Part shown: one piece after another, positions 13,342-63,632 of the stretch
How the letters are laid out: each line of letters begins with the position of its first letter
Position numbering within the stretch: position 1 is the stretch's first letter
Assembly (NCBI GenBank): GCA_025603075.1
Contig: MU626366.1
Location: forward strand, 10,492 to 74,491
Length of the DNA: 64,000 nucleotides
Direction: 5' to 3'
Origin: Neoconidiobolus thromboides FSU 785
Lineage: Eukaryota > Fungi > Entomophthoromycota
Notes under the pieces: model-generated
What the model was told of the DNA's origin: nothing
Databases searched by the model: none
Seen by the model: the letters and a program-made list of their open reading frames with translations, nothing else
Program-made: the position numbers and the translations under genes

Positions 13342-13448
13342 ATATGGGGATGTATTTTTGTATTTAAGAATTTTTCCAACAATTTTTCCACTCAAACAAC
13401 GCTTAAAAAAAGAAAAAAGTAATGAAGCCAAAAAAAACATCCCTATAT
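13342..13448 (+). mobile_element. ~105-bp foldback repeat (MITE-like), copy 1
   Basis: ATATGGGGATGTATTTTTG...CAAAAAAAACATCCCTATAT; lies 40 bp from the F-box/LRR stop codon. Confidence 0.85.
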
Positions 13449-13488
13449 AATAAAAGAATAACAAGGAAGACTTTATGGTAAGTTTTAA

Positions 13489-14600
13489 TCATTTATAAAC
13501 AATTAATTTGAATGTGGCTTTTTTTCTAAATGAATTTTCAATTTTTGATGAAAGTTGTATTGATGGACAAAACAGTAAATACTTCAAATCTTTCCATTCT
13601 TCGATAAACCGATGTAATTCTAATAATCTAGTTTGAATGCCTTTAATACCTAAATATTTTAATTTAGGAAGCAACTCTTTAAGGGGTTTCAACTCTTTAT
13701 ATAGATCGGTAATATCATCACTTATACGATTGAGGTGTAAGGTAAGGCTAGTAATATTAGGTGTAGCATTTTTCCTTGAAAAAAGGTTTATGAGATCAGA
13801 AATATCAAAATCAAACCATAAACCTAACTCTAGAGTAGTAATATTTTCATAAAGTTGACCAAAGATGGGCTCTATTGTATCAAGCTCAAAGTCGATTTGG
13901 TCAATCTTTAAGCTTTGTAATGTTGAATTGATTCTTTTCATTATTTTCAATAAACTCGATGATGTGTAATTTCGAAACGAACAAAGTGAAAGCGCTTTTA
14001 ACTTTGGTAAATTTTTTAATAATTTACAAAGTATCAAAGGACTAACTCTAGAAAGATGTTGAACGTTTAACTCAACCAAAGTTTCACTTAATGATTCTGA
14101 TAATAATTCGAATGCTATAAATATTTAGTATAATACAACAAAAATTAAAATGACTTACAATAATCTGTTAAATTGTAATTATTATTTAAAGTGAGAGATT
14201 TTAATTTTTTATGTGATATTAAATTTAACAATAAATTATCATATAAATGAACCACATTAGAAGCAATTAGTTTTTCTAAATAAGGACCTAAAACATTAAA
14301 TGTTACCTCTAATAGTTCATAAGATATTAAAGATAAAAAAGATAAATCTAGACATTTGATCATTTCCAACCTTGTAAAATTCATATTGTTTCTTGAATTT
14401 ATAAGGGAACCAAGTAAAATCTCTAACCTAGAGATATAGCATAGACGTAATGTTTCATAAATATAGGGCAGAATGCAATGATAATTCCTTTTATTGGTCA
14501 TTGCTATATTTATCAGTATGTCCTTATCTTCAACTTTGTCAAAACATTTTACAACCATTTCAAATAATTCTGGTGGTAATCTTTCTGTTGATTGAGTCAT
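13489..14600 (-). CDS. F-box-like/leucine-rich-repeat protein, 2 exons
   Basis: N-terminal ERLPPELFEMVVKCF (F-box-like) and LxxLxL repeats; intron 14158-14115 joins the two track ORFs in frame. Confidence 0.7.
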
Positions 14601-14869
14601 CTATGCTGAGTTTAGTATTATTATACCCTTAAAATCCTTTATATGTGTCTCGAAAATAATTAGCTTGTTTTATTATTGTTGTTTATATGAAATTAAACTT
14701 CACTCAATATGGGTTTGAAGTAAAGCTATGAATTCTTCTCTAAATCAATTAATTCAAAAGCTTAAAATACTATTTAAATAGCCTAAAATGATTGGAACGA
14801 AAAGCATTAGCTATAATTTGCCTTATTTGCGTATAGGTTTAAGCAAACTCAACTCATCATTTTTTAAAA

Positions 14870-17800
14870 ATGAAAGAACAAAATTTTCATACAACACTAC
14901 GAGAGTTGCAGTTTAAAAAAGGAGATGTTATACTTCGTGGTGATAGCATGGATAAAAGGATATTCGGTTTTTTAGAATTAAAAAGCTTTGAAGAAGATTT
15001 GAAGTCAGCAAAGGTAAAGCTAAATAATGAGTTTGATATTTTTACATTTCACGGAGATTGTGAAAATTACATTCCAAGGTTAGAAGAGTATTTATGGAAG
15101 TTATATTTTTATGATGGTATTAATTAAAATTAAAAAATTTATTCATATAATATAATTAAATAGAAACTTCGGAAAATCATGAAGCAAATGATATAATTGA
15201 ATTGTTCAAAAAAAGATACAAAGATAACCAATTTAAAGTTAATTTGGTAATTTGATAATTGCTTTTTCTAAACTTATTTAAATTATCTATAGAAAGAAAT
15301 TGAGAACGGAAATCGGGTTACCTTTGACTATCCTAGTATAATTAACCCAAATTTTTTAAGCACTTTAAAGAAAGAGGTGTTAGTTGATAGAAGGAGAAGG
15401 GAATTAAGAGAAATCCCAATACAAGTTGAACAATTTATGAGGAATAAACCAAAGATAATTTTAAAAGCACTGTCTTTATGCTCTCATTTAGTAAGATGTT
15501 TTTTTTTTAAAATAAAAATTATTTTACTTAATTTATTAGATTTATCTTTTAGAAACAAAATCAGATGATGAAATACTTAAATTATTTGAATCCCAAAAGC
15601 TTCATCCATTAACTTTTAGATTATGGAACCATTATCCTATAACCCCAATATCTAATTTTACCTCGAATATGATTGGTAATTAAGCCAAATTATTTAATAA
15701 TTAAATAATAATATATATTAGAAAGAATAATTACTGTACATGGAACAAGTAACATATTCGATCAGTAACTGTTACTATACTAATGGATTTATAGTTGTTC
15801 GTGCATCTTCTATAAAATCATTAGCAACTCAGATTGAGTTTGTTTGTCCAACATGTCACCGTAATCAAATTGTATTGTTTGAAGATGGAAAATATAGTAT
15901 ACCTAAAAAATGTAAAACTAATGGATGTAAGGGCAAAATTATGTATCCAGAGAGAGGGATTGATTCAGCTACACGTACAATTGATTTTCAAGAATTAAAG
16001 TATACTCATAAAAAATATCCTTCATTCGTACACCATTAATTATTAATAGGATACAAGAGTTAAAATCAGAATGCGATGATGAAGATTTGGGACGTATTCC
16101 CAAAACTTTAGATTGTGAACTTACTGAAGAACTTGTGGATCAGGTGATTCCAGGTGATGTTGTAAAATGTACTGGTATTTTAAAATTAAGGAGTGGTGAT
16201 GAATCAAACGGTAATATTTTATTTACATATTTTTATTAATCATAATATCGTATTAGGTAGATTTAAATCTGCTAGTAATATGTCTACCTTTTATCTTGAT
16301 AGTCTTTCTATTTCTAAAGCCATAACTCGAGATATTATCAACGAACCAAATTCCACAGAAGCTTCAGAAAACTTCAAAAGCAAAGATTTGACTGAATTTA
16401 GTGATAAAGACCTGGAATTTATTGATGAAGTATTTAATGAACCAGATCTTTTTAAATTAATAGTCAGCTCATTTTGTCCACAAATCATTGGCCATGAATT
16501 AGTTAAATGTAAGTATTTGAAATCCCATTATCCATAAATTAATCTTTACTAGTTGGTATCTTACTTTCTTTATTTGGAGGAAGAAAACGATACTCACAAG
16601 AGAACGCTTCATTTTCTATACGAGGGGATCCTCATGTTCTTATTGTTGGTAATTAATAACATAAACCTTTTTATTTTGATTTGATCTTAATATCCCTTAG
16701 GTGACCCTGGCTTGGGTAAATCTCAATTGCTATCAGCTGCAACTAGACTGGCACCAAGAAGTGTTTACGTATGTGGTTCTTCTGGTGTTTCCTCTTCTGG
16801 TCTTACTGTTTCAGTTGTAAAAGAAAGTGGATCAAGTGATTTTGCTTTAGAAGCGGGTAACTAAACATTTATCAACCGTTGATGCCTAATTTATTTTTTA
16901 AAGGAGCGTTAGTACTTGGTGATCAAGGTTGTTGTTGTATTGATGAGTTTGATAAAATGCCATGTGACTATGATGCTTTATTAGAAGCCATGGAGCAGCA
17001 ATCAATTTCAATTGCTAAAGCTGGAATTGTATGTAGTTTACCAGCTAGGACTAGTATTATAGGTAGCTTGTTTTTATATTTACCCAACATAATAATCTAT
17101 TTTATAGCTGCTGCTAATCCAGTAGGAGGACATTACAAGTAAGATAAACTATTTAATATTGACTAATATTAATTATCAAAGCAAAGGTAAAACTGTATCA
17201 GAAAATTTAAAATTAAGTGGAGCATTACTTTCTCGATTTGACTTGGTATTTATTTTACTAGATAAGCCAGATGAAAAGAGAGATAAATTTTTATCACATC
17301 ATGTAATGAGCTTACATTCTGGCAATAAAAAAGAGTTCAAAAAAAGTTATACACAGACAAGTATAGAATCATTTTATGAAGATAAATCATTATTAGGAAG
17401 AATTAAGTTGCAAGAAGATGAAGAAATGGATCTTTTAAACCTACCTCTATTTAGAAAATATATCGCTTATGCACGACAATATGTTCATCCTAAAATTTCA
17501 CCTAATGCTGCAAAGAAAATTAAAGACTTTTATTTGGAATTAAGAGCCAAGCATCATTCAAAAGATTCCATCCCAATCACTACCCGTCAGCTAGAGTCGT
17601 TAATTAGGCTAGTTGAAGCTCGTGCAAAAATGGAGTTAAGAGAACTTGCTACTGTTGAGGATGCCGAGGATGTTATTGAACTACTGTACTTTATTTTTAT
17701 ATATGGTATGTCGCAAAAATTTAACATTATTTTAGGAGATTTTCTTTGTTTGAAAGCTATACAAATAATGAAGGAACTGTTGAATTCCAAAGATCACAGA

Positions 17801-18175
17801 ATGGTAATAGTATGAATTTTAATAATAAAAGATTATTAAATAATCTAATTAGGTTCCGGAATGTCCCGCAAAGTTCAAATTAAAGAGTAATAATAGCATA
17901 TAGTTAATAATAAAATTTTAATAAATTTTAGATATGTTTCCAAGTTGAACAGAGTTTCTAATGATGAAAGCATTTCGTATTTTACTTATGATCATCTGTT
18001 TAGAATTTCACAAGGTACTTTTTACTTTTCATTTAAAAGTTAGCTTATTTAATTTTTATTTTAAGAGATGAATTTAAACCTCAAAATGGAGTTTCGGGAG
18101 TTTATTGAGCTTTTAAACCACCATGGTTATCTTCTTAAAAAAGGTGGCGATAATTATAAACTAAGTACATCATAA
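14870..18175 (+). CDS. MCM8: MCM8 helicase, multi-exon; start uncertain (may extend to ATG 14788)
   Basis: MCM8-type WKLYF, Walker [67 protein letters not shown] and C-terminal GYLLKKG. Confidence 0.9.
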
Positions 18176-62605: not shown

Positions 62606-63097
62606 GATATTATTTATAAATTTAAATTTAAATAAAATTTTGTTTAAAATTTATTTTTGAAAAATTTAATGAACAAATAAAACTTTTACTGTATCATAAT
62701 ATTTATATTTTATTCAACAAATTTTTATTTAATATAACAATTAATTAGATTAGTCCTTAAAATTTTATTTTTAATTCTAATGCTATCATACGTTATCAAT
62801 TAAACATAATTTGATAGTATCATAATATTATAACCTTGTTTAGCCTTATTTTTTTAACTGTTTTGGTTATTTTATTATAAATAAAACTAATCATAAATAA
62901 CAAATAAATAGTATTATTTTAAAAGATTTATTGAGTAAATTAATAAAAATGAAACATCAAGTTAGTTAGGATGTTTGAAATAAAAATCTCCCTACCATTT
63001 TCTTATAATCTCTAGATTAAGTTTATCAATCAACGCCAGATCCTTTGATGTATCAGAATCTTCTAAGTTTTTCAAAAATTAATCAGTACATAAAGCA

Positions 63098-63201
63098 ATA
63101 TGGGGGATATATTCTTATGTCTAGGAATTTTACTAACAATTTTTCCGCTCAATAGTGCTTAAAGATGAAAAAAGTAACGAAGTAAAAAAACACCTTTATA
63201 T
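63098..63201 (+). mobile_element. Foldback repeat, copy 13
   Basis: ATATGGGGGATAT...TACTAAC...CACCTTTATAT. Confidence 0.8.
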
Positions 63202-63251
63202 AATAGAACGATTGTCAAGAGGTTTTGGTAATTGTAAAAATAGTAGAAAAC

Positions 63252-63357
63252 TATTGGGGGTGTTTTTTTAACTTCATTACTTTTTCCATTTTTTAAGCGC
63301 TATTTAAGTGGAAAATTTGTTAGTAAAATTCTTAAACACAAAAATACATCCCCTATT
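63252..63357 (-). mobile_element. Foldback repeat, copy 14
   Basis: Reverse complement close to consensus. Confidence 0.88.
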
Positions 63358-63526
63358 GTTCTTTTCTTTACAAAGAACATAGTGAAAAGAGTGGTTTTCC
63401 AGGGTTAGCAGAATTAATAGTATAGGGGAATAATCCTGAAAAGTAATTATATCAACATAAATTAAGAAATTCAATGCTATACTTATTTGATAATTGTAAA
63501 AGCGCCTTAAACACTTGTGACTTTCC

Positions 63527-63632
63527 GTATAGGAATGTATTTTTGTATTCAATAAATTTACTAACAATTTTTTCACTCAAATAGGGCTTGAAAAATGGAA
63601 AAGTGGTGAAGCCAAAAAAAACATTACCATAT
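63527..63632 (+). mobile_element. Foldback repeat, copy 15
   Basis: TATAGGAATGTATTTTTG...TACTAAC...CAAATAG...ACATTACCATAT. Confidence 0.8.

Follow-up and report, generated by a model that had tools for sequence, protein, structure and literature searches.

A high-copy MITE family in Neoconidiobolus thromboides, probably mobilized by a Sola2-type transposon

A stretch of 64,000 nt from the fungus Neoconidiobolus thromboides FSU 785 (contig MU626366.1, G000:C109:10492-74491, from an assembly of 24.6 Mb in 799 contigs), called the window below and numbered from its first letter, carries many copies of a short repeat with GGGG...CCCC ends. We favor, with a probability of about 0.85, the interpretation that this repeat is a non-coding miniature inverted-repeat transposable element (MITE) of 98-99 bp, moved in trans by a cut-and-paste transposon of the Sola2 type located elsewhere in the genome. 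The family most probably descends from a Sola2-type transposon of the same genome, and it adds a member to a known kind of transposon, not a new kind of system. The initial annotation of the window, made from its letters, had proposed a MITE family with a target duplication, which stands, and had assigned it to the PIF/Harbinger-ISL2EU superfamily, which does not, given a duplication of 4 bp and a transposase of the Sola2 type.

A short inverted-repeat element flanked by duplicated target

A search of the window with an nhmmer profile of four copies returned 16 loci, of which 15 were clear (E values from 1e-11 to 5e-34; 10 on the plus and 5 on the minus strand), the same number and orientation as in the initial annotation, and one was a degenerate copy (E 3e-5) that can be added to it. 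The 5'-terminal 20-mer is present eight times and the 30-mer seven times in the window, where shuffled sequences predict 0.03 and 0.00 occurrences. The consensus and the flanks were analyzed in an alignment of 83 copies and their flanking sequence, drawn from the window and 29 other loci in the same genome, and the consensus that had earlier been read by eye proved nearly letter-for-letter equal to that of the 83 copies. The conserved block starts with GGGGATGT and finishes with ACACCCCC, with ATAT bracketing it on either side. While the GGGG...CCCC ends had been correctly described, the length of ~105 bp had not, as the element proper measures 98-99 bp (50 of the 83 copies; 92-101 bp overall) and the flanking ATAT is duplicated target.

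The terminal inverted repeats (TIRs) are roughly 20 bp long and imperfect, reading GGGG.TGT.TTTTT... and ...AAAAA.ACA.CCCC in the consensus and pairing in the folds of well-kept copies, and a central AGCGCT is conserved. When folded as single-stranded DNA, well-kept copies have energies between -12 and -17 kcal/mol (z-scores between -2.3 and -4.1), and the fold consists of the TIR pairing plus one inner stem of 8 bp. Worn copies fold no better than shuffles, so the hairpin that had been proposed for the whole unit holds for the well-kept copies only. The subfamilies suspected from shared variants are real, in that one set of copies is marked by four linked variants, 15T-39C-64A-82A (Fisher p 1e-5 to 1e-7).

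Since ATAT is its own reverse complement, ATAT flanks by themselves are not decisive, and it is the non-palindromic flanks that decide between a target-site duplication (TSD) and an end of the element. The flanking 4-mers are identical on both sides in 56 of the 83 copies, 44 of them being ATAT/ATAT and 12 non-palindromic. These twelve direct matches (ATTT four times, AAAT three times, and ATAA, AATA, TTAT, ACAT and ATCT) stand against one inverted pair. Paralogous empty sites are also present: in an alignment of dispersed genomic loci (L numbers), L030:1045-1305 reads ATAT-MITE-ATAT, while both L024:765-930 and L031:307-476 have a single ATAT at the same place, and a second case, in which L029 is filled and L034 and L007 are empty, is consistent but less clean. 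Because the non-palindromic flanks match directly and the empty sites carry one ATAT, the flanks are a 4-bp TSD of the form AWWT that lies outside the element. The earlier reading of the flanks as a target duplication is borne out; as to its size, given as AT or ATAT, the 4-bp ATAT survives, with ATTT and AAAT as variants, and the 2-bp AT drops out because all four flanking bases are duplicated.

Around the TSD the target shows further palindromic preferences, A at position -3 in 70% and T at +3 in 75%, which give the motif A-N-N-ATAT-N-N-T. The TSD of PIF/Harbinger elements is the 3-bp TWA and that of ISL2EU elements is 2 bp long; the 4 bp duplicated here, among them the non-palindromic ATTT, AAAT and AATA, agree with neither. 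piggyBac and Kolobok elements prefer TTAA, which was found in 0 of the 83 flank pairs.

A Sola2-like transposase family elsewhere in the genome

The Sola superfamily goes back, reportedly, to Bao, Jurka and Kapitonov in 2009. An AWWT TSD has been called a hallmark of Sola1 (PMC3845634), and the Sola2 elements of dictyostelids are flanked by ATAT, AAAT and ATTT (PMC3627910, which prints two Sola2 transposases, Sola2_DFa-2 and Sola2_PPa-1, in its supplement). A survey of fungal genomes lists a single case of Sola2, and Sola transposases are reported there to be without a Pfam domain (PMC5751038).

Three conserved blocks of published Sola2 proteins were back-translated to short degenerate patterns, with which the genome was searched alongside a control. 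The D1 block, locally DFKQNMEIG, gave 36 genome matches with 0 in the control; the D2 block, locally W-A-D-T-G-N-H-F-R/K, was seen dozens of times among 112 matches (control 23); and the D3 block, locally H/Y-H-G-K-S-I-V-D-G-H-F and searched as HHGKSIVDGHF, gave 72 matches (control 8). More than 15 loci carry all three blocks on one strand, spaced at a constant 246 nt and 111 nt. The catalytic Asp residues of D1 and D2 are 84 aa apart, compared with 83-87 in published Sola2 proteins, and the next block (H/Y before HGK) follows after 35 aa, compared with 36-46.

A piece of the transposase gene, L024:2-283, used as a protein query, had 133 matches in the genome, most of them interrupted by stops, and the longest open frames among these matches were 566, 415 and 381 aa. 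The same piece has 79 homologues in a library of 1.84 billion proteins; their alignment shows the motif order CxxC - DFKEN - LSHDS - WxDxGPHFR - HGKxxVDxHF, and no credible Pfam domain was found in the ten homologues that were scanned. Altogether the long Sola2-like element occupies about 100 loci, mostly broken. Motif and protein searches found no copy of it anywhere on the contig of the window, in keeping with the earlier statement that the window holds no autonomous partner, and twenty small contigs of the genome yielded many MITEs as well as fragments of a dynactin gene and a Zn-cluster gene, with no transposase. A DDD transposase with Sola2 catalytic blocks, the motifs being compared by eye, is thus carried by the long element and not by the MITE. 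From the order and spacing of its motifs, set against published Sola2 sequences only, this transposase is most likely of the Sola2 type.

Relation of the long element to the MITE

The 3' part of the Sola2-like element corresponds to a repeat at L031:1-687, also present in L024, L030 and L017, which at more than 20 loci of the genome begins 250-255 nt past the third catalytic block and in the same orientation. The 3' terminus is well defined, as six copies stop at the same base, ...CAGACAACCCC, and are followed by ATAT (AAAT once) and then by unrelated DNA. Both the terminal CCCC and the ATAT/AAAT duplication are therefore common to the long element and the MITE. In an end-anchored comparison, the last 45 nt of the long element were identical to the 3' end of the MITE at 31 of 45 positions, a score that 4 of 5000 CCCC-keeping shuffles equaled (p about 0.001); the match of the same 45 nt to the other end of the MITE was not significant. 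These alignments, which cover the 3' end of the long element, establish a genuine likeness of modest degree. For the long element with the same ends and a transposase gene that had been anticipated for the family, this element is a candidate: its 3' end resembles that of the MITE, and its product is a Sola2-type protein.

Three other candidates for an end of the long element were rejected. One half-MITE, L029:1902-1939, is followed by sequence that is unique in the genome, and another, L016:1322-1361, is followed by sequence with no relative among the loci compared, so that both are truncated copies. At L021:1662-1976 a MITE-like end is joined to a piece of the Sola2 open reading frame (ORF), but as a normal 5' end this junction fails, being shared by one other locus (G000:C40:133166-133450, 72% identity), while the other matches begin ~50 nt further in, ~340 nt upstream of the first catalytic motif. 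The two loci with the common junction probably represent an old, internally deleted, non-autonomous derivative.

MITE copies are also found inside relics of the long element, at L024:284-386 and L030:1119-1225, and two catalytic blocks on contig C10 are 102 nt further apart than usual, with a perfect MITE end between them. The MITE therefore kept moving after those copies of the long element had died. Several further copies of the long element are longer by 101-103 nt, which equals a MITE with its duplication, in the same interval, either between the third block and the 3' part (contigs C8, C84, C366 and C86) or between the first and second blocks (C34, C53 and C107, the last being L024). These shared extras suggest that copies of the long element already bearing a MITE were themselves copied.

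Copy number and age of the family

The genome-wide search proposed with the initial annotation confirmed the family, as the 30-bp end, with up to 3 mismatches, matched 1696 times in forward and 1745 times in reverse orientation, that is 3,441 times without strand bias, while the reversed control gave 0. Because this strict filter catches just 7 of the 16 copies in the window, the true number of MITEs may be about twice the count. Divergence from the consensus ranges from 5 to 17% (median 11%) in copies not chosen for similarity, and the best genome match to the near-consensus copy at 27073-27170 has 96% identity. From the linked-variant subfamily and these levels of divergence it follows that amplification took place in at least two waves and that the family is not a young one.

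Substitutions from the consensus show an excess of transitions in which G:C to A:T predominates, and this pattern demonstrates a strong AT-ward mutation bias. In 58 aligned copies, C to T and G to A account for 196 changes at 30 G/C sites, and A to G and T to C for 157 changes at 69 A/T sites.

Proposed mechanism and alternative explanations

Under the interpretation that we favor, the DDD transposase of the Sola2-type element, or of a close relative, would bind the ends of the MITE and excise it. The MITE would then be inserted at AWWT sites, mostly ATAT, within the wider palindromic context of A at -3 and T at +3. The target would be cut with a stagger of 4 nt, and repair of the gaps would leave the 4-bp duplication.

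Several observations weigh against this interpretation. With ends that are only ~70% alike, the copies of the long element that we see may be collateral relatives of the actual parent, and the putative link to a parent is drawn from the 3' end of the long element. No intact transposase was seen among the scored copies, nor were near-identical MITE copies seen, so that mobility at present is unsupported. Moreover, Sola1 also gives an AWWT TSD, and the choice of Sola2 over another Sola group comes from a comparison with Sola2 motifs only. Given the median divergence of 11%, the identity of 96% in the closest pair seen and the lack of an intact transposase among the scored copies, the family looks old and largely inactive. 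Scans of metagenome contigs with a 26-mer of the transposase and a 28-mer of the MITE gave 0 matches.

The strongest competitor, though an improbable one, is that the MITE was moved by another family with a 4-bp TSD, such as Sola1, Ginger or another lineage of Sola2, and that its likeness to the end of the Sola2-like element is a convergence of AT-rich sequences. The figure of 31/45 from one end of the long element would allow this, as would the fact that Sola1 targets AWWT as well. Convergence does not readily account for a likeness that is end-anchored and significant and that goes along with an identical terminal CCCC and TSD (ATAT/AAAT), and at about 100 loci it is the Sola2-like family that is abundant. 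As to the other families, Ginger2 is reported to prefer TATA, and this preference, like that of piggyBac and Kolobok for TTAA, differs from ATAT.

Somewhat less probable again is an outcome in which the family has not fallen silent: one long Sola2-like ORF (up to 566 aa) might still encode a working transposase or, alternatively, the hairpin copies might have been co-opted as regulatory or small-RNA sites. If a working transposase were confirmed, N. thromboides would offer an active natural pair of Sola2 transposon and MITE in a culturable fungus, the first that is experimentally tractable for the superfamily. We know of no biochemical study of the Sola superfamily.

That the repeat is no mobile element at all, and represents a conserved host cis-element at fixed places (a hairpin terminator, a regulatory site or a small-RNA gene), is very unlikely. 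Such a role would fit the intergenic placement, the fold-back of well-kept copies and the conserved AGCGCT, yet it is at odds with thousands of copies in both orientations without strand bias, with the target duplications and paralogous empty sites, and with copies that sit within other repeats and transposase relics. Copies also decay freely, worn ones losing the fold, and an Rfam scan of the window gave no match. Finally, membership in the PIF/Harbinger or ISL2EU superfamily, AT or ATAT then being the target duplication, was the initial annotation's own deduction from the GG...CC ends and AT-rich flanks and can be practically dismissed, as the directly repeated non-palindromic 4-mers and the empty sites with one ATAT establish a 4-bp TSD and the long element with similar ends codes for a protein of the Sola2 type, not of the DDE_Tnp_4 type.

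Comparison with known transposons and significance

The closest known system is Sola2 as described in dictyostelids (PMC3627910). Both have a 4-bp AT-rich TSD (ATAT, AAAT, ATTT) and short imperfect TIRs, and both transposases present the order CxxC, DFKEN, L-N/S-H-C/D-S, W-x-D-x-x-x-H-F-K/R and HGK-x-x-D-x-H-F at similar spacing with no Pfam domain. They differ in that the host here is a zoopagomycote fungus, the fungal survey having one Sola2 case (PMC5751038), in that the GGGG...CCCC ends are unlike those of the dictyostelid elements, and in that the family here persists chiefly as a 98-bp MITE in thousands of copies. The Sola1_NA elements of Bombyx mori and Rhodnius prolixus (PMC3845634) are likewise non-autonomous members of the Sola superfamily with an AWWT TSD and ends starting with GG, but their length is 250-700 bp and their copies run to hundreds, as against 98 bp and thousands for the MITE, and their parent is Sola1, whereas the transposase here bears Sola2 motifs. 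With the Stowaway and Tourist MITEs of plants the family shares small size, TIRs, fold-back potential, very high copy number and a location in gene-poor spacers near genes; the plant elements differ by a TSD of TA (2 bp) or TWA (3 bp) and by the transposase superfamilies involved (Tc1/mariner and PIF/Harbinger).

The searchable literature, papers on N. thromboides included, makes no mention of MITEs or of Sola for this fungus, and the latter papers give a repeat content of 13.5%. By the strict count the MITE has at least 3,400 copies and makes up about 1.4% of the DNA, a figure that may in reality be double, and it accounts for a large share of the interspersed repeats in a compact, AT-rich genome of 24.6 Mb. 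The few hosts in which Sola2 is known are joined by an early-diverging lineage of fungi. For annotation, it implies that the MITE should be masked ahead of gene and promoter analysis, and for transposon biology it provides a defined target motif together with a pair of MITE and candidate parent.

Copies and neighboring genes in the window

The window has a G+C content of ~27% and eukaryotic genes, among them those for a coatomer protein, a Kelch protein, a LIM-domain-binding protein, a DEAD-box helicase and a Na+/H+ antiporter. ORFs of at least 90 aa occupy almost half of it, and none of the true ones is overlapped by a MITE copy, which upholds the intergenic placement noted earlier; the sole overlap is with a 90-aa frame that spans two copies at 63.3-63.6 kb.

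The individual copies illustrate the range of preservation. An ATAT/ATAT duplication flanks the copies at 13346..13444 (+, 99 bp, E 5e-32, ends and flanks read), 23897..23990 (+, 94 bp, E 9e-25), 27073..27170 (+, 98 bp, E 5e-34, which folds back with a z-score of -3.4), 38274..38370 (+, 97 bp, E 2e-30, of the 15T-39C subfamily), 45302..45399 (-, 98 bp, E 2e-17) and 63102..63197 (+, E 7e-19, with a worn 3' end). Direct, non-palindromic duplications are seen at 23384..23482 (-, 99 bp, AAAT/AAAT, E 5e-21), 27340..27435 (+, 96 bp, ATTT/ATTT, E 1e-23) and 63256..63353 (-, 98 bp, AATA/AATA, E 8e-28). The two flanks are unequal at 26336..26435 (+, 100 bp, ATGT/ATAT, E 8e-21, again of the 15T-39C subfamily), at 29915..30013 (-, 99 bp, TAAT/ATAT, E 8e-26) and at 63531..63628 (+, GTAT/ATAT, E 4e-20), where the ends are worn. 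Wear has also affected the 3' end of 29150..29248 (+, ...CTACCAT, E 4e-32) and the 5' end of 62504..62601 (+, E 5e-24), and it has left a partial copy at 34322..34404 (-, profile positions 15-104, E 1e-11). The degenerate relic absent from the first count, whose sequence was read, lies at 42678..42767 (+, E 3e-5).

A 422-aa ORF at 43855-45123 (+), between two of these copies, was considered as a hidden transposase and rejected, having neither a Pfam match nor a Sola2 motif. Its product is of low complexity and coiled-coil-like, and a hydrophobic C-terminal tail suggests a tail-anchored protein. Two GDSL-lipase-like genes form a tandem pair at 25175-25894 and 28158-28853, with ~71% identity across 110 aligned bp, and MITE copies come after each of them. 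At the left end of the window, positions 1-4000 have a G+C content of 17.5% compared with 24-32% over the remainder, and this stretch includes an ORF for a SpoU-type methylase (1915-2751). A second dispersed repeat of ~465 bp, with copies 81-95% identical, is frequently found near MITE copies. In the window it lies at 63735-64000, where the end of the window cuts it, ~100 bp from the closest MITE, and further copies are at L007:285-750, L010:353-818, L016:1996-2459, L016:2733-3108, L021:1980-2442, L029:681-1147, L030:290-757 and L041:814-1273.

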